Sequence record: MN871453.1
Direction: 5' to 3' (one strand)
Length of the DNA stretch: 64,000 nt
The notes under the pieces are model-generated. The model worked only from the letters and a program-made list of their open reading frames with translations. It was not told the DNA's origin and searched no databases. Positions 27,866-51,176 of this stretch are shown in pieces. Made by a program: the position numbers and the translations under genes. The stretch's first letter is position 1, and each line of letters opens with the position of its first letter.

Positions 27866-28206
27866 AGCGCAGCGCCCGCCGTGTTCTTACGCACAGTGAA
27901 AGAAATCACGGAAGGTTCAACAACGCTTTCCGTTTTATAGCCGTTTTCCGGTAAGAAGGCGACCAATAAATCTTTCAACGTTTCGACGTCTGCTGCGAGG
28001 GTAGTTGGATCATCCGTCCAATACGTTCCGTCAGGGTGAGTGATGTTGATACGCAACACATTTTCTGACACCTCGGCGCTGACTTCGTAATGACCTGCCC
28101 ATCCGTACATTTGGGTATTTTCATTATTTTCAGCGTAGGCTTTGTAGACCGCGCTGGCATCGGAAAACTCTCGTTTAAATTCTTCGATTAAATGTTTGGC
28201 GATCAT
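27862..28206 (-). CDS. Hypothetical protein
   Basis: Likely start MIAKH at 28206 (GGGGAG SD). Confidence 0.65.
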   Translation of the reverse strand: MIAKHLIEEFKREFSDASAVYKAYAENNENTQMYGWAGHYEVSAEVSENVLRINITHPDGTYWTDDPTTLAADVETLKDLLVAFLPENGYKTESVVEPSVISFTVRKNTAGAAL

Positions 28207-28790
28207 CGTGAACTCCCCATTGTTTTTTCTAACCAATCAAAGACGATCTGGTGAGAAAGGTCGTAGATGTTGATGCAAGGGATATCACGATCCCTTGCAA
28301 TTTTAAAGGCAGACCGAGTACCGCCTTTCGGAAGCCCTTCAGAGTCCTCTGGCGCACACGCGATCAAAAATGCTGACGGCGATTCAACGTCTTCGCCAAG
28401 AATCTGAAAGACGTTGCGAATATGGAAACGCTTTTGGCCGTCAGTTAAACGATCCCAGACCGGGTGAACGGTCGAGATAATAGCCTCTGCTTTCGCAATG
28501 CTTTCCGGGCTGTAGTCGTAACGATCGTAGCGATCAGAGACAAAGACGTTGTCACGCTCGAAGGTTTTCCACGGAAGAAAGATCTGTGGGTCACGAATAT
28601 AGTCCGCTGCTGAAAGCGAGTTCTCAAAACCAGATTGAAACGCTTGGTCGGCACCCGGTGCTTTCCCGGAGCGGATTGAGAACCCCTGTTCGCAAAGAAA
28701 GAATCCTAACTCTTTACAGAACGAAAAGTGTGCCTGTCCTAAGTCAGTGGATCCTATCGTTGTCACGTAAGCAAATTCGGTCTTTTCCAT
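28203..28790 (-). CDS. SLOG-superfamily (DprA/Smf-like) nucleotide-binding protein
   Basis: TTIGST, IRSGKAPGADQAF and KGGTRSA motifs; GGAGGG SD. Confidence 0.7.
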   Translation of the reverse strand: MEKTEFAYVTTIGSTDLGQAHFSFCKELGFFLCEQGFSIRSGKAPGADQAFQSGFENSLSAADYIRDPQIFLPWKTFERDNVFVSDRYDRYDYSPESIAKAEAIISTVHPVWDRLTDGQKRFHIRNVFQILGEDVESPSAFLIACAPEDSEGLPKGGTRSAFKIARDRDIPCINIYDLSHQIVFDWLEKTMGSSR

Positions 28791-28802
28791 ACTCCCTCCA
28801 AA

Positions 28803-28883
28803 TTATTCATCGTCGTCGTCATCGCTATCGTCGTTGCTTTGACCCAGTAAAACCAAAACCAATAAATCGAGTAAATCAGACAT
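28803..28883 (-). CDS. 26-aa hydrophobic/acidic micro-peptide
   Basis: Hand-translated MSDLLDLLVLVLLGQSNDDSDDDDDE; AAGGTG SD; first ORF after promoter P4. Confidence 0.55.
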   Translation of the reverse strand: MSDLLDLLVLVLLGQSNDDSDDDDDE

Positions 28884-28920
28884 TGTTTAATCACCTTATT
28901 TTTTGTTAATGATGTTAACT

Positions 28921-28953
28921 GCAATAGGGTGATATAGTTATCAAACTAATTGG
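28921..28953 (-). promoter_or_regulatory. Putative early promoter P4
   Basis: CCAATT-N11-TATATCAC-N4-TTGC. Confidence 0.65.
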
Positions 28954-29017
28954 AACGGTAGTGAAAAGAGAACGGTAATTTTCCTATGACAATAACCCCA
29001 TGAGAAAGGTAACGGTA

Positions 29018-31234
29018 ATGAGTGACTTCGGGAATAAGATCAGTGAATTAAACAGTTTGACTAGCGGGAATATGGCAGGAGAGTTACCGCTAAGTTTGAC
29101 GTTATCTAGCGGTACTTTGGCGACGAATAAGATCACGTTGAGTCAGGTTCGGGATCTTTTTGATTTTGACCATGCCTTTGAGACAGTGGAGGAAGGGATT
29201 GCTGCAACAGTAGAAAACCAACTCTTCTACGTTTATGTCGACAGTAACAAATTATCGGTTAATGAGTATATCAGAACAAATATTGGTGCGAACGCCGTCA
29301 TTGGTAATAGCGGGACTAAGAAAGTCATTTATATCCCCGAACTTTTGAAACATGTCAAAGTACAAGTGGATAGTTTTGCTGCACTGAGGGAGTTTAAACC
29401 ATGGTGGGAAGGTCAGGTAGTTTACTTGAAAGGGTACTATTCTGATGGGGTGACCGGCGGCGGGGATTTTGTCGGGCATTTAGGTACAAAGGTTGACGAC
29501 GGGGGTACTGTCGCGAGTGGTGCCGGATTTTACTGGGAACGCCAAGGGAAAAAGATTTTAGAGGTAGAATCTTTTGGTGCTGTAGGCGATGGTCAAACGG
29601 ATGACAGCGTCTCTTTACAGAGGGCACTAAACATAAAGAACATCGTTCTTATCTTTTCAAATAATTATCTCATTTCATCAACGCTTATTCCCGCCGAAAA
29701 TGTGAGAATAAAGGGAGCAGGTACAATCATTCACATCACTGATAACACCTTCAATTGGTCGGTTTCCAATCGAGCCAGCCCATATCCTGCGTTTTTAATC
29801 AGCAATAAAAATATCCTTTTTGAAGACGTAACAATTATGAGCACCTTCGAAGCTATTCAAAGTATGTCCGGTGGCGACAATTTGATTATTAAAAATGTTA
29901 CTGCCGGAGGGACGAGTGACAAACGCACGCTATCCTCTGTCTTTGTTTTCTTCAATACAAAAAACACGCAAGTTCTTAGCTGTAACTTGGGATATGCGGG
30001 TAAATTAGCAACATGGAATGGTACGGATATTGCAGCAGGTGGGTGTGACGGTATCGATTTTGGCGGATGTATCGGTATTAAAATTTTTGATACCATTTGT
30101 CATGATGTCGGAAGGAATGGAATTAACTGGTATGGTGCCTCCGAAGTCAAAATTAAAGATTGTAAACAATCCTACTGCGGTCAAAATGGCATTCAACCTG
30201 GTCCACACCCTTCGTACAGCAAAGCTGAAATTGTCAATAATCTTGCTGAATACTGTTGCGCAGATGCTATAGATTGCCGTTATACAGGAAGCGGAACTGT
30301 TGTAGTAAATCTCAAGTGCATAGGATGTAGCTCTAACTGGATAGGAATGCTTTACGGTGATGTTAATTATATCAGTAATGACGGTACCGGAATTGTTACT
30401 CTTGCGCGAGTAAGTAATGTGACTGTGAGTGATTGTATTTCAGAAAACTCCAGTGGGGTTATTTTGTGGTTTGAAGGCGTAAGTAATGGGACATTCACGA
30501 ATATCACGGGCATCTCTACTTATACGCGTTATGGCGTAGGATTCTTTACCGATTGTAACACAATCTCCATGAGTAATGTTAACATCAAGGTTAAGGGTTC
30601 TGCACTGTGGTTTGGTGGAAGTACAACAATGACGGACCTTATGATAGGCGGTCAATGTCATTTTGAGAGTTACGATAGTTACTCTCTTTTAATTCCGAAT
30701 ATTACTTTGGTGAGATTTAAATTAAGTGATTGTACTTTCATTGGGTATAATGTTGCGAATATAATTTTTCATACCACTCGATGTGAATTTGTGACCAAAT
30801 CAACAAATACCAGCGCAGTTTATCTTGGTGTGGCAAATACAAAACACGAACAGTTAAAATGTAGTGGCAGTACCTCGGCACCACTAGTTAATGTAGGTGT
30901 AGGTTCAGGTGTAATGATCAATCAGTCCGAATTTATTAACTCGGGTACAGGTGCCGCATTAACAGTTGTTGGGAGTTATCTTTTTATCCTCACTTCGTGT
31001 ATTGTTTATAATACTGGTAGCGGGAAAGGAAATGCTATTGAAATCACAGGTGGTCAGAATAATTCCTCTTTTTCTTTTTGTGATTTTTATAGCGCAAGTG
31101 GTTACTGGGTCAATTCTACTGCTGCTTCTCATACTCGGTTAAATACGAATGGAAACCGAGAGAACGGCGGTTTAGGTGCTTTCTGGACAAGTATCGCTAA
31201 TGTCTTTGATATTAAAGGTGTTCAAAGGACATAA
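29018..31234 (+). CDS. Tailspike / depolymerase with a pectate-lyase-like beta-helix
   Basis: KISELN N-terminus; GGGDF...DDGG...W linker; SFGAVGDGQTDD beta-helix entry; AT-rich body; TATG at 28985. Confidence 0.85.
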   Translation: MSDFGNKISELNSLTSGNMAGELPLSLTLSSGTLATNKITLSQVRDLFDFDHAFETVEEGIAATVENQLFYVYVDSNKLSVNEYIRTNIGANAVIGNSGTKKVIYIPELLKHVKVQVDSFAALREFKPWWEGQVVYLKGYYSDGVTGGGDFVGHLGTKVDDGGTVASGAGFYWERQGKKILEVESFGAVGDGQTDDSVSLQRALNIKNIVLIFSNNYLISSTLIPAENVRIKGAGTIIHITDNTFNWSVSNRASPYPAFLISNKNILFEDVTIMSTFEAIQSMSGGDNLIIKNVTAGGTSDKRTLSSVFVFFNTKNTQVLSCNLGYAGKLATWNGTDIAAGGCDGIDFGGCIGIKIFDTICHDVGRNGINWYGASEVKIKDCKQSYCGQNGIQPGPHPSYSKAEIVNNLAEYCCADAIDCRYTGSGTVVVNLKCIGCSSNWIGMLYGDVNYISNDGTGIVTLARVSNVTVSDCISENSSGVILWFEGVSNGTFTNITGISTYTRYGVGFFTDCNTISMSNVNIKVKGSALWFGGSTTMTDLMIGGQCHFESYDSYSLLIPNITLVRFKLSDCTFIGYNVANIIFHTTRCEFVTKSTNTSAVYLGVANTKHEQLKCSGSTSAPLVNVGVGSGVMINQSEFINSGTGAALTVVGSYLFILTSCIVYNTGSGKGNAIEITGGQNNSSFSFCDFYSASGYWVNSTAASHTRLNTNGNRENGGLGAFWTSIANVFDIKGVQRT

Positions 31235-31236
31235 AG

Positions 31237-31266
31237 AAAAGAGAGGGTCAAAAGACCCTCTCTTTT
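31237..31266. terminator. Bidirectional terminator
   Basis: AAAAGAGAGGGTC-AAAA-GACCCTCTCTTTT. Confidence 0.85.
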
Positions 31267-31526
31267 TATTTTCTCTTCAACATCACCGTCACCAGACCCA
31301 ACACCGGATCCATTGAATCTGTTCTCACCACCTCGTGGCGCGGTAGCTCTAATATCAGTTGTGTAATACGATGCTTCTCTGCGTCCGATAATGCACTAAG
31401 GTCTAATGAGTGAAAGTCTTCCACCAAACGAAGTTCATCGTCATTATACGGAAAATTCCATTCTTTCATATCACTCAATTTATTACCTGGAACGTAGGTC
31501 ACATTGACACGAATAAATTTATTCAT
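31266..31526 (-). CDS. Hypothetical protein
   Basis: 86 aa. Confidence 0.6.
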   Translation of the reverse strand: MNKFIRVNVTYVPGNKLSDMKEWNFPYNDDELRLVEDFHSLDLSALSDAEKHRITQLILELPRHEVVRTDSMDPVLGLVTVMLKRK

Positions 31527-32038
31527 TACCAGGTTACCTCTTTAAACTCAGAGAAGAATTCACGTTCCGGTATTGTTTTTGTTTCCCTTTCAATAGAAAC
31601 AAAACTCCCAACGATAGACCATTCCACAGGGAAGTTGTTAGTCATTACTCGATTAAACCCTTGAAAAAGACGACCTTCTTTAATCGAGTAATAATACGCT
31701 TTGGGGTCCAAATCTTTTGTTTCTTTCAACCGTAAGTTTTTTTCTGGGCTATAGGTTAATTGGTACAAATCATCCGGTATAGCCTTTACTTTCTTCTCCA
31801 CCAAAGAAAACAAATAATGCAACTTACAACCCCCGTCGAAATCTCCGCTGCGTAAGTATAAGAAAATATCTCCAAGTGTATTGTCCTTGATAAAAGTAGC
31901 AGGGGTATTGTTTTTACTTTTAAACATACGCCAGGTTCCTTTAATAAAATGGTGGGTGGTTTTACCACCCACCATAGATTTATTCTGCGTAGATCGCCAA
32001 CGCAGTTTGACAGATAGGGGAACGCACACAATCGTCAT
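31526..32038 (-). CDS. Hypothetical protein (start uncertain)
   Basis: 170 aa ORF. Confidence 0.55.
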   Translation of the reverse strand: MTIVCVPLSVKLRWRSTQNKSMVGGKTTHHFIKGTWRMFKSKNNTPATFIKDNTLGDIFLYLRSGDFDGGCKLHYLFSLVEKKVKAIPDDLYQLTYSPEKNLRLKETKDLDPKAYYYSIKEGRLFQGFNRVMTNNFPVEWSIVGSFVSIERETKTIPEREFFSEFKEVTW

Positions 32039-44089: not shown

Positions 44090-45871
44090 TTACAACCACT
44101 GCGTCGCACGTTGACGAATAGTACGAAGACTTTCCAGTACTTTCACGTCGCCGTTCAGGTACACAGTCCGCATCGCGTCAACCTCACTACCGCGAAGCGC
44201 TTCATACTCTTCACGGGTCAGGTTATCACGCAGTTCGAGTTTTCCGTTCTCGCCCTTCGCAACGATCAGGTAACCTTTTGCCGATTTCTTGGTGCCGTCA
44301 TCGGTTTTCGGGTTTTTCGCGATAGAGTAATATTTACCGTTAACCTTCCCAGCGGTCGCCTTCATGGCGATACCCAGGGTGTCACGGGTAACATACTGGA
44401 ATTCGAAACTGCCCACACCAAAGACCACGTTGGAACTACAGAACCCGTTCGCTTTCAAACGAGAAAGGATCTGTGTCATACGAGTCAATGTGATCGCATC
44501 CCCGTAGATCAAACCGACGTGAGGGTCCAGTTCTTTGTAACCCGCAGCATTGATTGTCCCGCCGAAGATTTCAAAGAGAATTTGTACCGCCCCTTTTTTC
44601 TCTTCCAAAGAAATAGGTTTACCGCTTTTAGTCGAATAGAAAACGTTGTCGATACAATAGCACTCGTATCCGTTTTCAGAAGAAAAACGACGAACGTTTT
44701 CTTCTGTTTTCTCTCGACTTAATTCCGAGTAGAGCGTTTCACCGCCGATTCGCGGGTCGGGATAAATGCCAGCGGAAAGGTGATTATCGCCATCCCAAGT
44801 ATAGCCGCAGAGGATGTGATACGGATTACCGCTATCCGGGCGATAGACCAGTTTACCGTCACGCGCCATAATCGCATCTTTATTAGCGATGGCTTTGGTG
44901 GTGATGGTATCGAAGAAGTCGTTAGTATCGCTGACGAAGCTGAAAACGCCAGACGGATAAACTTCGGTGATCAGTCGACGTTGGAAAAGTTCTTCCGCTT
45001 TCGACAGTAGTTCCGCTTCAGTCGCATCGCGATATCCCGGAGTAGCTTGTAACTGCTCGACATAGACCGCGATATTCAGACAGGTCACACTGTGCTCTGT
45101 AGCGGGTACACTCCCGGCGATTTCAGAAATCGGCATATCGCCTTCTGGGTTATAAAAGCGATTCGCTGTCCAGACCGAAGGGAAGCTATCGCTCCCTTTG
45201 AAGTAGATCAATTGACCGACTGAACTGTTGGCATCATCGAACATCCCCGACATACCGCGCAGGGCGAAGTTATGGGATTGGTAGTCGATAAAGGCTTTTG
45301 CCGCACCCGTTTCGTTAGCGTACTGCTCTAACACTCGACGGAAGTGCAACGCTTTCGTTGCCAGTACACATGGCTTCCAGAGTTCGTTACTCCAGAGGTC
45401 TTCGAAATAACCCGTCAGCCACCCGAAGCCGTCAACTGTGTTTTCAATCGTCAGGAACGGAACACGAATAGGGACGAGTGAGCCTTCCGGCACCGCACGG
45501 ATCTCCAGTGGGATATAACCCAGTTCGTGAAGCGCTTTCAGGTGAGCGGATTTCACCACACCTTTACCCAGAACACCGTCCATGTACTGAAGGTATTCTG
45601 CCTCCGATTCGTTGAACGGCGCTTTAAAGAAGTTATCGAAACTCCCTACCAACCAACGCAGAACCAGGCGCTGCATTCCCATGAACACCGAACCGTCGAA
45701 GTCCAGTGGCGTATTGAAGTACGTATGGCTACGTGCCGTCAGGTTTTCAAAGAAGCTGTCAGTGCCCAGAGGTTGTTGGTTGATGTGCCCAGTTTTGTAG
45801 GCATCGCACAGCAGGAAAACCAGCGGATCTTCAGTATAGAACTTTGGGTCTTTCAGTAAAGGGTTGGTCAT
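44090..45871 (-). CDS. nadV: NAMPT-family enzyme, likely the NARP1 nicotinamide ADPR-transferase (Namat)
   Basis: CDAYKTGH, HNFALRG, VPATEHSV, VSDT, RPDSG, LIYGDAIT, FGVGS, NPKTDDGTKKSAKG; coupled to the Prs-like gene. Confidence 0.85.
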   Translation of the reverse strand: MTNPLLKDPKFYTEDPLVFLLCDAYKTGHINQQPLGTDSFFENLTARSHTYFNTPLDFDGSVFMGMQRLVLRWLVGSFDNFFKAPFNESEAEYLQYMDGVLGKGVVKSAHLKALHELGYIPLEIRAVPEGSLVPIRVPFLTIENTVDGFGWLTGYFEDLWSNELWKPCVLATKALHFRRVLEQYANETGAAKAFIDYQSHNFALRGMSGMFDDANSSVGQLIYFKGSDSFPSVWTANRFYNPEGDMPISEIAGSVPATEHSVTCLNIAVYVEQLQATPGYRDATEAELLSKAEELFQRRLITEVYPSGVFSFVSDTNDFFDTITTKAIANKDAIMARDGKLVYRPDSGNPYHILCGYTWDGDNHLSAGIYPDPRIGGETLYSELSREKTEENVRRFSSENGYECYCIDNVFYSTKSGKPISLEEKKGAVQILFEIFGGTINAAGYKELDPHVGLIYGDAITLTRMTQILSRLKANGFCSSNVVFGVGSFEFQYVTRDTLGIAMKATAGKVNGKYYSIAKNPKTDDGTKKSAKGYLIVAKGENGKLELRDNLTREEYEALRGSEVDAMRTVYLNGDVKVLESLRTIRQRATQWL

Positions 45872-46731
45872 TTCACGCGTCCATCTTTAGCAGTTAAATA
45901 AGATTGGGTTGGTAACCCGTCGTCAGTGATATTTTCCCACCAAACGTTGGTTGAGAAAATCTGATCAAAAGCGATAGAGAGTTCGCCCAGGCCCTTAGAA
46001 AAAATTCCATGGGTCACGAAGAGACTGAGCGATTTCGGGTTTTGGGTATTGAGCTTTTTCGCCAGCTCAGTGAAAGTCCACCCACCATCGCAGATGTCGT
46101 CGACAACCAACAAATTACGACCTTCGATATTGTCATTGTCCAATAACGTAATGTCGAGAATGTTGCCGGTTTTAGTATCGCGCTTTTTGTTTGCGTAAAC
46201 GATAGGCACCCCGCCGAGTAGTTTTGCCAACTCTTCAGTTTTCTTCGCCGCGCCGCCGTCCGGTGAAACTAACACGACGTTATTTTCCCGAATCCAATTA
46301 GCCAATAAATTGTAGACAATTTTGGACTGTTCCAGGACGACGAGGTTTTTGATCAGCGCCGGGGTAACGTTAGAGTGAGGATCGTGTATCAACACTCGGT
46401 CTGCTTTCAGGCTGTTGAACAGTTCAGCAAAAACGCCGAGTGAAAACGATTCGCCTGCATTACAGACACGGTCTTGTCGCGCGTACGGGAAATAAGGCAC
46501 AACTAAATGGAGTTCTGTTTTCGCAGTGTATTTCCCAATACGACGAATGGCATCGACCAGTAACAGTAGACGCACTGCCTCGGTGGAGGATTTGATACTT
46601 CCTTCTATTTTAACAACACCGATATCATGAGGCGGTAGACCATGACGACTAATGGCGATATGTTCCTCGCCACCCGGGAAAGTTAAATTTTCATAAAGGA
46701 CCGGTTGGTCATCAAACGTAACTTTAAACAT
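45868..46731 (-). CDS. prs: Prs-family pyrophosphokinase, likely the NARP1 ADPR-PP synthetase (Adps)
   Basis: FPGGE, PYFPYARQDR, DPHS, VSPDGGA, VDDICDGGWTF, VTHGIFSKG. Confidence 0.88.
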   Translation of the reverse strand: MFKVTFDDQPVLYENLTFPGGEEHIAISRHGLPPHDIGVVKIEGSIKSSTEAVRLLLLVDAIRRIGKYTAKTELHLVVPYFPYARQDRVCNAGESFSLGVFAELFNSLKADRVLIHDPHSNVTPALIKNLVVLEQSKIVYNLLANWIRENNVVLVSPDGGAAKKTEELAKLLGGVPIVYANKKRDTKTGNILDITLLDNDNIEGRNLLVVDDICDGGWTFTELAKKLNTQNPKSLSLFVTHGIFSKGLGELSIAFDQIFSTNVWWENITDDGLPTQSYLTAKDGRVK

Positions 46732-46779
46732 TGTAACCCCTTTCAAAATGTTAAAACTTAATCTTCAAAATAAATATTA

Positions 46780-47319
46780 TCAGCGTGTTATTGGATTCTG
46801 TATTTTCACGAACGTAGAGAAACGACATCCCTCGTCTTCCCCGAATTCATGCGACTCAAGGGTCCAACCACGGTGAACGGTAGTATAAGAGAATAGTTTA
46901 CTGAGTTCTTGGATAAGATCAATGTCGAGCGGAACATTCCCTTTGGAGCGAATAGGGATTTCCGTCACGTAAAGCTTCTGTACCCGATCTAATAGTTGTT
47001 TGTAGATACTTACCCCTCCGCAAATAACAATCTCGTTGTAACCTTTTCTAGAGGCATCTACAGCGATATCTTCAAACGAGCTATAGGCAATGATATCAGG
47101 GATAGATTCGAATTGAGAAGGGTTACTTGTCAGAACGTAGTGGGTACGTCCGGGTAAAGCCCGTCCTATTCCTTTTGCTGTAGTAGAGCCCATGACAATC
47201 GCTTTATTTTTGGTTTTCCTGATGAACCATTGCATGTCTTCTTTGGAGCGCCAAGGGAGTTTATCGTCTTGACCAATAACGAAATCAAGATCGTGTGCTA
47301 CGATGAGAGAGAAAATCAT
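46780..47319 (-). CDS. folA: Dihydrofolate reductase
   Basis: IVAHD..FVIG..DKLPW..KEDM, VMGSTT, LPGR..YVLT, ICGGVSIY. Confidence 0.92.
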   Translation of the reverse strand: MIFSLIVAHDLDFVIGQDDKLPWRSKEDMQWFIRKTKNKAIVMGSTTAKGIGRALPGRTHYVLTSNPSQFESIPDIIAYSSFEDIAVDASRKGYNEIVICGGVSIYKQLLDRVQKLYVTEIPIRSKGNVPLDIDLIQELSKLFSYTTVHRGWTLESHEFGEDEGCRFSTFVKIQNPITR

Positions 47320-47368
47320 TGTGAGTTACCTTTCAGTGAGTTCAAAAGAAAAAACAGAAACGTGATAA

Positions 47369-47396
47369 TAGACAGAGGGTAAATACCCTCTGTCTA
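47369..47396 (-). terminator. Terminator hairpin
   Basis: TAGACAGAGGGTA-AA-TACCCTCTGTCTA. Confidence 0.75.
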
Positions 47397-47405
47397 TGAA
47401 TTAAA

Positions 47406-49889
47406 TTAAGCGAGCGTTACTGAAAACCAACTGTTCCATGCCGAGGTATTGGTGTTCCAAGTCCTCCGGTAAATCTTTGTACTGGCAGCGTTAAAGATTT
47501 CATAAGCCCCGGCTCTATTATTGGGGTGACCAGTGAACATTTCTACGGCACCTAATGACTCCGGCCAAAGTGAATCATTATAGATTGGGCTCTTAATCGT
47601 AGTGTATGGCGCAAACGAAAGGGGTGTAGTCGTGGTGTCAATCATTGAAACCATGTTATTAGTTAAATAACCGCCCACCATCTGCCAGTTATTATCCTTA
47701 TTGAATCTCCACCCAGAGATCTCCCCATAAGCTGAACCTGTAGTCTTGACAAACATTCCCTCCTCCCAGGTAATGTACTGATATCCCGGTAAAAGAGAGT
47801 TGTTTGGTTTTCCTAGTGTTGTAGAGTCATAGACCGTAGAGAATTCTTCGAGTATCCATTTTCCTTCTACCCCGACAGATACTTTACCTAAATATCTATC
47901 CCTTAAATGAACCCCTTTAACTTTTTGGATAGCAGAAAAGTTCCTACTGTTACGAACGACAGCAGAGTATCCATATATTTCTGGTTGGGTAGCTGAGTCT
48001 GTTGTTAGGACGTTAGAAATATAAATTGTGTCTGCGCTATTTCTTCTTATTGGTAAATTATTAAAGTATAATTTACTTGCCGTACTATTAGTATTACCCC
48101 AGTTAAGTACGAGCTGTGCCTCCATAATAGAGCTTGTAGTGGCGGTAGGTGAATTATGTACTACGTCGGAAATAGACATAGATGAAATTAATCTATCACC
48201 AACGCAATTGATGATGTTGTACGTGTCGTCAACAATTTTACTATTAACAGTAATACCGCTAATAGTAATTGTCGGGATGGTGGTGTAGCCAATAACAATT
48301 AATGACCGTGTACTCCCGGAAGGATAAAGTTTAATATTCGAGATGGTCAATGAATCTATACTCGAGGTATAGGTATTGGTCTTACCCGTATCGGCTGTCA
48401 ATATCCCTATTCTAATAGAATTATAAAGATGCTGGTTATTTGTAGTCCCAGCAACAGCGATGTCGATTTCACTAATAATCACAGAACCTATAGGTAACCA
48501 ATAATCGGTGGCTGAGCTATTTCCGGTAACGTGGTTGTTACCAATTCGTACTCCGCTATATTGAGTAAAGCCTTTGATGTTCGAAACATGGATTTTCTCG
48601 ATACCCACCCCGCCTTGTCCAGAAATTGAAACCGCATTCCAGGTATAAACTGTGGTCGTACCATCGAGGTCGCTTAACTTATGCCATGGGTTGACATTTC
48701 TAATTGTGATGGATCTGATCGTAAGGTAATCGAGATTTGTGATCATGTTAGAGTCTGAAGGAGTCCCACCTTCAATCCAAAGACACCCAGAAAATACAGC
48801 GACCATGTCATCGGTCGTGAACCCGTAAACATTTTCTATCAAGACATCTTCAGAACATCCGGTTATGCCGTCACCTCTAGATCCACCTTGAGGGAACGCG
48901 GTGGCAATATGAGACCAAACTTTAATATCTCTGGCATGAAAGAACTTGTTACCACCGTGGTTGATGTTATGGCCTCGAAAATCATGTACAAAGACATTTT
49001 CTAACAAAACTTTGTTAAAGAGACTAATAATCAAACCATGCGATAAATCGGAAAACGTCCCGCTCGCATTAAGTGTTTCTTCTCCTTGTCCCGCCCAGTT
49101 TCCATCCAACTCCCCTCCGTTCCAGTGGAAGTTATTCGTGCGGTCACCGACGATAACAAACATATTCTTTCTAACATTATTGGCTAACTTGAAGATAGTA
49201 CCCTCTTGACACTCTACAATGAAATCCTTAGAGATTAATACTTTTATTTTGCTATTTATCGTATATGTGCCGGCCGTAAAAATTACCTTTTTAGCTGACC
49301 CATTGAAAATAGAACGAATTCTTTCATCAATATCAACGATGTTTCCTCCTGTCACCCCGTAGTAATCGGAGAGAACAGTCCCTTCCTCTAATTCCCTTTC
49401 CCAGTAAAACCCCGCACCACTCGCCACGACCCCGCCATCATCGGTTTTTGTACCTTTATGACCGATGAAAGTCCCTCCTCCCAAGTTAGTCCCTTTATTC
49501 CAACCGAGAAGCGTCACTCGTTGTCCTTCGTAAACAACAGGTAGCGTGCGTAACGTTGAAAAACCATCAACTTCTAAAACTAACTGGGTGGAAATGCTTT
49601 GCTGTAATTTCCCGTAATAGTCAAAAGTAGCAAAAGAGTAATGGGTATCGACTAATAAATCTACAGAGTTACCATTGGCGTCTATCGGGGTACCTGTAGC
49701 TGACAACGCGATTGGTTGCGTTAATGCTACTATTGTCCCATCGCTTTTCCGCCCGGTAACAGTTAATCGATTAGCTGCGACCGTAGGGTCTGTCCCAGCA
49801 GCACCGATATATAACGTGCCATTTTTTGCCGGACGAAAACCATCGGCTAAGGAGAAACTTGAATTCTGAGGTGAAACGATATTAGACAT
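47406..49889 (-). CDS. Tailspike / depolymerase with a P22-type head-binding N-terminal domain
   Basis: Likely start MSNIVSPQ. FRPAKNGTLYIGAAGTDP..AANRL.V...DGT.V.LTQPI resembles the P22 gp9 N-terminus. Shared DDGG linker and beta-helix (RGDGI, GFTTDDMVA). Confidence 0.8.
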   Translation of the reverse strand: MSNIVSPQNSSFSLADGFRPAKNGTLYIGAAGTDPTVAANRLTVTGRKSDGTIVALTQPIALSATGTPIDANGNSVDLLVDTHYSFATFDYYGKLQQSISTQLVLEVDGFSTLRTLPVVYEGQRVTLLGWNKGTNLGGGTFIGHKGTKTDDGGVVASGAGFYWERELEEGTVLSDYYGVTGGNIVDIDERIRSIFNGSAKKVIFTAGTYTINSKIKVLISKDFIVECQEGTIFKLANNVRKNMFVIVGDRTNNFHWNGGELDGNWAGQGEETLNASGTFSDLSHGLIISLFNKVLLENVFVHDFRGHNINHGGNKFFHARDIKVWSHIATAFPQGGSRGDGITGCSEDVLIENVYGFTTDDMVAVFSGCLWIEGGTPSDSNMITNLDYLTIRSITIRNVNPWHKLSDLDGTTTVYTWNAVSISGQGGVGIEKIHVSNIKGFTQYSGVRIGNNHVTGNSSATDYWLPIGSVIISEIDIAVAGTTNNQHLYNSIRIGILTADTGKTNTYTSSIDSLTISNIKLYPSGSTRSLIVIGYTTIPTITISGITVNSKIVDDTYNIINCVGDRLISSMSISDVVHNSPTATTSSIMEAQLVLNWGNTNSTASKLYFNNLPIRRNSADTIYISNVLTTDSATQPEIYGYSAVVRNSRNFSAIQKVKGVHLRDRYLGKVSVGVEGKWILEEFSTVYDSTTLGKPNNSLLPGYQYITWEEGMFVKTTGSAYGEISGWRFNKDNNWQMVGGYLTNNMVSMIDTTTTPLSFAPYTTIKSPIYNDSLWPESLGAVEMFTGHPNNRAGAYEIFNAASTKIYRRTWNTNTSAWNSWFSVTLA

Positions 49890-49984
49890 ATTGACTCTCT
49901 CTAATAGATAAAAGTTTACATACGAATCTTCGTAACTTTTTGAGAGAATCTTAAAAATAATCAAAAAAAAATAAATTGCCATAG

Positions 49985-50015
49985 CCCTAGGGGATCCGTA
50001 ATGGATCCCCTAGGG
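49985..50015 (-). terminator. Terminator hairpin
   Basis: CCCTAGGGGATCC-GTAAT-GGATCCCCTAGGG. Confidence 0.75.
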
Positions 50016-50038
50016 TACGTTCGCGCCGAATAGCGGAA

Positions 50039-50344
50039 TTATTTAAACGCCGGGTGCAGTTTGATCGCTTTCACTTCGGCGGCCAGCTCTTTATCAGCTT
50101 TGGCTTCAGCGAGGTCAACCGCCTGCTGGAGATTAACCCAGAATTCGACGGTGGTTTTGGTAGCCTTTGCCAGGCGGTGCGCGGTGCGGATCGTCAGTTT
50201 GGTTTTACCGTTGATCAGGCGAGACAGCGTTGCTGTCGCCAGGCCGATATGCGCAGCGAAATCAGTCGGGGAAATTTCTTTCGGTTCCAGGTATTCTTTC
50301 AAAAGAATTTCGCCCGGCGTAGAAGGTTTGCGTGCTTTTGCCAT
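50039..50344 (-). CDS. higA: HigA-family antitoxin / XRE HTH (101 aa), in frame with an upstream ORF extending to 50764
   Basis: TPGEILLKEYLEP..IS...FA...G....LSRLING...LT...AHRLA.......FWVNLQ; its own AAGGA SD. Confidence 0.8.
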   Translation of the reverse strand: MAKARKPSTPGEILLKEYLEPKEISPTDFAAHIGLATATLSRLINGKTKLTIRTAHRLAKATKTTVEFWVNLQQAVDLAEAKADKELAAEVKAIKLHPAFK

Positions 50345-50765
50345 TTTCGGTTTTTCCTTTGGTTTTTCAGGAGGTTGCGTAGTATTACTGTTATTGCATA
50401 ATACTACTTCTTGACGTGAAAGATTACCGAGGAACAGAATCGAGCCAACAGTGAAAATCGACTGTTTTACGCCGTCTGGTGTATTACAGAAAAGGGAGAC
50501 CTGATTTTTATTTTTCTGCAGAAGATCAATGAGCAAATTAACATGATAATCTGGCGGATTATTCAGATCGCGGAAGAGCAGTGCTTCAGCTTCTGTAAAG
50601 CTGATCTTCTTCTCCTGTACCATCACCATCTGAAGAGGGAACTTTAACTTATGGACTAAGATCCGATACGGTAATGAAACTACCGTTTTCAAATTACCCT
50701 CTTTATCGAGAATGAATCGGTTGAGCTCTTCGTCTGTAATGTCATTATTAACGTAGTGAATCATT

Positions 50766-51176
50766 TTATTCTCCTTTTAAATCTCTTAAATCAATAAGTC
50801 CATCAGAATAAGATAATTTGAAAAGTCTTTCATCGTGCTGAATAAATTTAATCACAGCTTCATTTACTCCGACATCGATCACTTCGATGCAGCACAAAGA
50901 GACATGTACACCCGGATGGGATTTGCGTATCAAATATGACAGTTTACCTGTATTTTCCCGAATATCCTCCAAAGAAGATAGGTACTCGACCAAGACCATA
51001 CTTTCGTCTATATTGCCTATAATGAAGGAAGCCCCTGTTGATAAATGACTGATTGGATTCGGCTTATTGTAGGGCTTAACGGTGAAAGTACGGTCGCTAC
51101 TTATCAGCGTAAGATCATACGTTCCTTCTTGTACGCCTGGTACAACGTTTAAACCAAAGATACTCCTGATATTCAT
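50766..51176 (-). CDS. Hypothetical protein
   Basis: 136 aa. Confidence 0.6.
   Translation of the reverse strand: MNIRSIFGLNVVPGVQEGTYDLTLISSDRTFTVKPYNKPNPISHLSTGASFIIGNIDESMVLVEYLSSLEDIRENTGKLSYLIRKSHPGVHVSLCCIEVIDVGVNEAVIKFIQHDERLFKLSYSDGLIDLRDLKGE

Follow-up and report, generated by a model that had tools for sequence, protein, structure and literature searches.

The tailspike gene and its head-binding domain

The window, a 64,000-nucleotide stretch of sequence record MN871453.1, carries at 47406..49889 (minus strand, stop codon included) a gene for a tailspike, a putative capsule depolymerase whose N-terminus opens directly with a head-binding domain of the P22 type. The list of open reading frames and the translation place a single coding frame at these positions on the minus strand and not on the plus strand, and the assignment to a tailspike draws in addition on PHROG families and an AlphaFold2 model. 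The longest minus-strand frame at the locus spans 47406..49982. The gene itself starts at the ATG at 49889, giving a product of 827 aa (P0002, referred to below as the spike), because a hairpin with perfect 13-bp arms and a T-run at 49985..50015 (minus strand) ends the upstream helix-turn-helix (HTH) gene and is followed by an AT-rich leader. A perfect 14-bp hairpin with a subsequent T-rich run, located just 3′ of the stop codon (47368..47397, minus strand), represents the spike's own terminator; both structures were recognised from the inverted repeats and the surrounding sequence. Being flanked by hairpins on both sides, the gene therefore presents itself as an insulated, self-contained unit. 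A sigma-70 promoter scan at the spike gave matches at chance level only, and a k-mer search for a promoter class returned a weak GATAAAAG signal (8 matches versus 3.5 expected) that lies in the wrong orientation upstream of the spike. PADLOC gave no match for the spike.

The window is 100% identical to MN871448, MN871452 and MN871453 (~299 kb; phages KpSz_1, KpZh_1 and KpZh_LPS_45), which are labelled 'Serratia phage'; the host is Klebsiella pneumoniae. The genome backbone is 96-97% identical to those of KpLz-2_45, KpYy_2_45, LPKP23 and KpXa_1, and ~75-78% identical, in patches, to those of vB_KpM_FBKp24 (phiKp24, genus Maaswegvirus) and vB_KpM_Centimanus. Of the jumbo myophage phiKp24, which bears hyperbranched fibres, the contractile tail and the capsid were solved by cryo-electron microscopy (cryo-EM; PMC9700779). 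Whole-genome searches were performed on MN871448 (identity 100% where compared, a 27 kb part of the window), FBKp24 (NC_061421.1) and KpYy_2_45. In these three genomes the Pfam sheath models PF04984 and PF17482 gave no match, despite the cryo-EM-proven sheath of FBKp24. As the models fail even on FBKp24, the contractile tail is taken from the literature and from the relatedness within the clade, and it is on this basis that the earlier note's description of a contractile-tailed jumbo phage stands. The structural proteins of the clade thus appear to lie beyond the reach of standard Pfam profiles.

The earlier note had also proposed that residues ~1-100 follow the N-terminus of P22 gp9, in a tailspike of a jumbo myophage lineage. 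Indeed, residues 4-100 (49590..49880, minus strand) matched the Pfam family PF09008 (Head_binding) with 50.4 bits, against a cutoff of 24, at an expectation value (E) of 3.2e-13 and over profile positions 9-104 of 113. A six-frame search of MN871448 recovered the same family with 54.6 bits. At the sequence level, the solved head-binding domains of the P22, Sf6 and CUS-3 type in the PDB matched the N-terminus of the spike at E 1e-8 to 3e-10, identity amounting to 31.8% for P22 gp9 over residues 4-110 and to 34.3% for Sf6. PHROG families of tail spikes and exopolysaccharide (EPS) depolymerases match the spike as well, and the tail-spike families cover the residues of the head domain. Furthermore, an AlphaFold2 monomer model of residues 1-215, built with 68 homologs (predicted local distance difference test, pLDDT, 89.2), retrieved 7SG7, 9JG6, 2VKY, 1LKT and 8EB7 in a Foldseek search with probability 1.0 and E 4e-9 to 4e-8. 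The template modelling scores normalised to the target were 0.56-0.79, with 0.79 reached for 1LKT, a 104-residue crystal domain. In the full-length model and the alignments the domain occupies the very N-terminus of a tailspike with a beta-helix. These findings confirmed that the head domain is a genuine P22-type domain, the match being far beyond chance. Each jumbo genome contains exactly one Head_binding gene.

The head domain is followed by a neck (residues ~103-200; 49290..49583, minus strand), a module of the PF27114 'Phage_tail_beta' type with a helix cap. PF27114 was assigned from precomputed matches on the 95%-identical variant P0003 and 14 other relatives rather than from a score of the spike itself. 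The best sequence match of the N-terminus to a solved structure is the Pantoea protein WceF (6TGF), at E 1.6e-15 over residues 5-199, WceF being the best match by fold as well, and Depo32 aligns to residues 106-234. By fold, the neck matches Depo32 (7VYV), DpK2 (7LZJ), 8IQ5 and 5W6P, among them the K2-2 and CBA120 TSP2 tailspikes, at root-mean-square deviations of 1.3-3.3 Å. The authors of the WceF structure described the same succession of a P22-like head domain and a CBA120-like neck (PMC7949094). Five paralogous spikes of KpSz_1 share only residues ~103-212 with this protein. Four of these paralogs lie in the main fibre cluster, at 168567-177002 of MN871448, and one lies isolated at 262993-263316. 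Since the neck alone is common to the five other spikes, the head domain would be one of several alternative N-terminal adaptors placed before a common neck. The neck looks like a common joint through which an N-terminal adaptor is coupled to a catalytic module.

Residues ~201-650 (47940..49289, minus strand) were modelled as a parallel, right-handed beta-helix, the putative catalytic and receptor-binding module, and residues ~651-827 (47409..47939, minus strand) as a beta-rich C-terminal domain (pLDDT ~84-93) which is co-inherited with the beta-helix in homologs that reach residue ~823. In the full-length monomer model (pLDDT 88.1) a regular ladder of strands extends over residues 201-650 at pLDDT >85, and Foldseek matched this model to the Depo32, WceF, Sf6, P22, HK620 and DpK2 tailspikes and to GH28-type enzymes; homologs likewise support the assignment. 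A Pfam sequence search of the 827-aa spike matched no beta-helix family. The best-conserved polar residues of the helix are R338, D340, D360 and D361, each present in 84-86% of 44 homologs in an alignment of mixed families. From the fold and the related sequences we infer that the spike is a capsule depolymerase, and by homology it is presumably trimeric.

The undetected hub and the carriers of the domain

In P22, the head-binding domain grips the tail hub formed by gp4 and gp10. The earlier note had stated that myoviruses lack this hub, and a six-frame hidden Markov model (HMM) search agrees with that statement: neither gp4 (PF11650) nor gp10 (PF11134) was found at E<=1 in any of the three genomes KpSz_1, FBKp24 and KpYy_2_45. 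As positive controls served podophage contexts with such spikes, in which gp10 was detected in seven of seven and gp4 in six of seven cases. Both proteins were present in all five of a diverse set of podophages whose spikes contain Head_binding (SEN22, IME10, Skarpretter, Kosakonia Kc166B and Vibrio 1.275.O). The head domain of Vibrio 1.275.O is as distant from that of the spike as is the one of P22, and its hub proteins were still found with scores of 2e-57 and 7e-10. The genes for the metagenomic relatives P0049 and P0086 each close a P22-type tail module: that for P0049 follows coat, gp4, gp10 and gp16-like genes, while for P0086 only gp10 is on record. As gp4 and gp10 went undetected in the three clade genomes and were found in the controls, the domain is present here in the absence of its usual partners. 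If a hub had been acquired along with the domain, it should be about as recognisable as the domain itself, since the latter is still 32% identical to that of P22. In SEN22 (NC_028696.2, 7627-9024), the gp10 (Phage_stabilise) homolog contains two in-frame TGA codons, which may reflect a sequencing error or a broken gene.

The distribution of the domain over phage morphotypes was surveyed by tblastn with the 110-residue head domain against 50,697 phage records, complemented by HMM checks. Matches were obtained in 184 records, 13 of which are ~300 kb phages of the clade. Among those listed, the other matches belong to P22-like, epsilon15-like or related genomes of 36-54 kb or to tailspike-gene records of ~2 kb. 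Hints from BFVD and tblastn of the head domain in other large phages (Moabite, Eowyn and BUCTxx100), in SopranoGao and in a Gamaleyavirus were rejected, there being no PF09008 in their genomes or proteins; what these have in common with the spike is the neck and possibly a head-like region of great divergence. A frame of at least 859 aa in OY979416.1 (vB_Kpl_K57alpha1.2, 28034-31576) shows weak similarity to spike residues 9-196. This frame is opposite in strand to annotated DNA polymerase/helicase pseudogenes, and the annotation of the record appears displaced relative to its sequence.

Module exchange and the hairpin-bounded cassette

The head domains of the jumbo type are monophyletic, with a support of 100 in the Shimodaira-Hasegawa-like approximate likelihood ratio test and a stem of 0.77 substitutions per site. 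They fall into two sub-lineages that are ~50% identical, one shared by the window and Centimanus and the other of the FBKp24/KpYy type. A single clade, a long stem and two such divergent sub-lineages indicate one old acquisition of the head and neck module in the clade. Across at least 12 variants of 670-905 aa, residues 1-165 are mostly 60-100% identical, and beyond residue ~175 the proteins are unrelated. The breakpoint in identity thus falls at residues ~165-175, within the neck. An N-terminus that is kept and a C-terminus that is swapped are the classical signature of an anchor joined to an exchangeable receptor module, and the neck is the recombination junction. The wastewater variant P0003 is 100% identical to P0002 over residues ~200-827 and only ~95% identical over residues 50-200; the N-terminal and catalytic modules have different histories even in alleles as close as these.

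The origin of the catalytic part is a different one. The beta-helix and the C-terminus are 54-56% identical to depolymerases of YC1 (252 kb), Pylas, GADU21 and PW7 (N4-like), and the spikes of the Klebsiella phages XDRKpn-1, P01 and phi1_175010 (~159 kb) belong to the same identity class. No capsule type was found in the literature for these relatives. The catalytic part stems from the depolymerase pool of Klebsiella phages and not from P22-like phages. The proposal of the earlier note that the spike was captured from a P22-like prophage accordingly survives for the head and neck (~165-200 aa), which are P22-like, and is not supported for the rest, the catalytic part being of the depolymerase pool; nor is a recent capture supported, as the sequences point to an old acquisition.

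At the nucleotide level, the exchanged unit spans 47373..49962. This cassette has no nucleotide similarity to KpYy_2_45, which is otherwise 95-97% identical. In blastn alignments, the similarity to KpYy_2_45 ends at 47372 and resumes at 49963, where the two hairpins lie. Centimanus-like sequence makes up the 5′ part of the cassette (49429-50777). The spike gene runs in the same direction as the adjacent genes in the window and in Centimanus and is inverted in FBKp24, KpYy_2_45, MJ359 and KpLz-2_45, and there is no conservation of the upstream DNA between the two orientation groups. The locus is syntenic in 13 of the 13 clade genomes compared, the slot being located between a dihydrofolate reductase (DHFR) gene and an HTH gene. 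The DHFR gene (46780..47319, minus strand) was identified by PF00186 with 110.7 bits and is the neighbour in FBKp24 and Centimanus as well. On the other side lies the HTH_3 gene (50039..50764, minus strand; PF01381), annotated in relatives as 'plasmid antitoxin with HTH domain'. Its 241-aa product carries the HTH_3 domain at the C-terminus and gave a weak PADLOC match to PDC-M69A (E 3e-4). Together with the DHFR gene, the metabolic genes adjoining the spike at 44090-47319 (minus strand) encode a NAMPT-like protein of 593 aa and a ribose-phosphate pyrophosphokinase-like protein of 292 aa. This trio of NAMPT, PRPP synthetase and DHFR constitutes a module for NAD salvage and nucleotide metabolism that is conserved in FBKp24 and Centimanus. 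Contigs from several metagenomic studies of the gut, of wastewater and of surfaces carry the spike gene intact; one of them, from wastewater, covers the whole stretch with 67 differences.

Possible attachment of the spike and comparison with known systems

With moderate confidence, we infer that the spike is a trimeric capsule depolymerase which is anchored by its head and neck to another part of the branched fibre apparatus, where it adds a capsule specificity. The protein comprises, in this order, the head-binding domain (4-100), the WceF/Depo32-type neck (~103-200), the beta-helix enzyme (~201-650) and the C-terminal beta domain, with the head and neck as the lineage-conserved part and the beta-helix as the exchangeable specificity part. 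The head domain would still be an anchor, re-used to plug an extra spike onto the fibre apparatus through a partner other than P22 gp4/gp10, and the extra spike would widen the host range by one capsule type. The hairpin-bounded cassette keeps its place between the DHFR and HTH genes and is swapped, and even inverted, between close relatives. The wider reading, to which we give even weight for and against, is that the P22 head domain has been re-purposed in this lineage of nucleus-forming jumbo myophages to plug into a new socket of the hyperbranched fibre apparatus, on a hairpin-bounded and orientation-independent cassette that is exchangeable including the anchor allele. Docking is favoured by the lack of an apparent signal peptide, which follows from the N-terminus starting directly with the head domain and sets the spike apart from WceF with its Tat (twin-arginine translocation) signal.

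Several observations weigh against an anchored spike. Two ~50% identical head alleles occur in nearly identical backbones, which is unusual for a tightly co-evolving anchor. Homologous recombination at the neck motif that the spikes share, rather than selection for docking, could have kept the N-terminus conserved while the C-terminus was swapped. The spike gene sits among genes for nucleotide and NAD metabolism, not among structural genes, and far from the main fibre cluster. The HMM negatives for the hub are weak in a clade so divergent that the sheath models also miss a proven sheath, and no virion proteomics or mass spectrometry for any clade member was found in the literature. Finally, the head domain of WceF exists without a virion and is needed for solubility (PMC7949094).

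The foremost alternative, which we consider possible though unlikely, is a soluble enzyme outside the virion that is released at lysis and strips capsule or biofilm nearby, with the head domain as an N-terminal trimerisation or solubility cap as in WceF. Such a role would suit an undetected cognate hub, the tolerance of divergent head alleles in near-identical backbones and a gene that lies outside the fibre cluster, next to those for DHFR, PRPP synthetase and NAMPT, with a terminator of its own. It would also accord with WceF, which carries head and neck without a phage and aggregates once the head is removed. Against a soluble spike, the P22 spike folds without its head domain (PMC7949094), the sharp contrast between the conserved head and neck and the unrelated C-termini is typical of anchors, and free phage depolymerases usually arise from internal starts and not from dedicated anchor-bearing genes. 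In the case of phiKp24, the authors of the preprint kept the soluble option for gp313 only.

A spike docked in the manner of P22 on the head-tail connector or neck of the virion, by way of structural analogues of gp4/gp10 that cannot be recognised by sequence, is improbable. The weakness of HMM negatives in this clade leaves room for it, and no finding contradicts the earlier note's idea of a capsid site, but a hub acquired with a 32%-identical domain should be detectable, as was the hub of the Vibrio phage at comparable divergence. In addition, the phiKp24 text searched describes fibres only around the baseplate; in it 'neck' and 'whisker' are absent and 'collar' appears once, as a point for measuring tail length. 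That a P22-like prophage of Klebsiella or another enterobacterium recently supplied the complete tailspike gene is most improbable and already contradicted. P0049 and P0086, the closest non-jumbo proteins with head and neck, are indeed encoded in P22-like tail modules. Yet no podophage head domain exceeds ~36% identity, the head domains of the jumbo type form one long-stemmed clade that already comprises two alleles, the relatives of the beta-helix belong to Klebsiella phages that are N4-like or of ~159-168 kb or 252 kb and in no case P22-like, and the locus is syntenic in all clade genomes compared.

If the spike is anchored to the fibre apparatus as proposed, tailspikes would have a further, new adaptor-receptor pair by which they attach, and anchor domains could cross between podovirus and myovirus tail architectures. 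The clade has the most elaborate receptor-binding apparatus described, and this is the only spike whose anchor has a well-known structure and binding mode elsewhere, in P22 and Sf6, yet whose known partners are missing here. With its head domain serving as bait, the spike offers a tractable entry point to the branching network. For spike design, the neck provides a natural cut site at residues ~165-200, and the slot tolerates either orientation. The discovery itself is modest, since the domain is annotated in a sister phage and the enzyme activity of the ortholog is published. The head domain of the FBKp24 protein is noted in RefSeq, and the fibre system has been described. New are the controlled demonstration of the missing hub, the single old origin indicated for the domain in the clade, the neck as recombination joint, and a hairpin-bounded cassette that is swappable in either orientation.

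The nearest known counterpart is gp196 of phiKp24 (KP24gp196, YP_010298833, 660 aa), annotated in RefSeq as 'tail protein; contains head binding domain of P22 tailspike'. The recombinant protein is active on K2 and K13 capsules (DepoCatalog, PMC13385381 supplement). phiKp24 has 14 predicted fibres, 11 of them with confirmed depolymerase activity in the DepoCatalog preprint. In the phiKp24 model, gp196 is a group-3 secondary fibre on a branching site, an assignment made by inference only (PMC9700779). No discussion of its P22 homology or of the missing hub was found in the literature searched. Like the spike, gp196 is encoded in the slot between the DHFR and HTH genes of a jumbo myophage of the clade, and the two proteins share the head and neck (51-53% over residues 2-211) and the overall architecture. 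In contrast to the spike gene, the gp196 gene is inverted, its product is 660 rather than 827 aa long, and the head allele is ~50% identical. Similarity stops at residue ~196-211, the beta-helix and C-terminus being unrelated and the catalytic modules not homologous. As its beta-helix is unrelated to that of gp196, the spike probably has a substrate other than K2/K13.

Head and neck spikes of P22-like podophages, such as the colanidase-type spike of SEN22 and the metagenomic P0049 and P0086 (PF09008 and PF27114), have the same two-domain N-terminal module, with matches over spike residues 3-211, 18-215 and 3-239. They differ in that they are encoded directly behind the gp4, gp10 and ejection protein genes of ~40 kb phages, and their identity to the spike is 26-36%. 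The donor was probably of this kind. Depo32 and DpK2 (7VYV, 7LZJ) share the neck fold with the spike, and the group of YC1, Pylas and GADU21 shares its beta-helix and C-terminus. The spikes of all of these, as well as those of XDRKpn-1 and P01, begin with different N-terminal anchors, which fit the virions of the respective phages (sipho-, N4-like and ~159-168 kb phages).

WceF of Pantoea stewartii (6TGF) resembles the spike in its order of head, neck and beta-helix, and is a second head domain without a P22 hub. It is, however, a biofilm glycanase of bacterial origin that is exported by the Tat route, is encoded within a cluster of EPS genes and has a different beta-helix, whereas the spike is phage-encoded and lacks a signal peptide. 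With P22 gp9 and Sf6 gp14 (1LKT, 2XC1, 7SG7, 8EB7), the spike has in common an N-terminal domain of ~32-34% identity, its fold and its position before a beta-helix enzyme. Unlike in these phages, the domain belongs to a ~300 kb contractile-tailed phage without detectable gp4/gp10, a neck is inserted between head and beta-helix, and there is no relationship between the catalytic part and the endorhamnosidase of P22.

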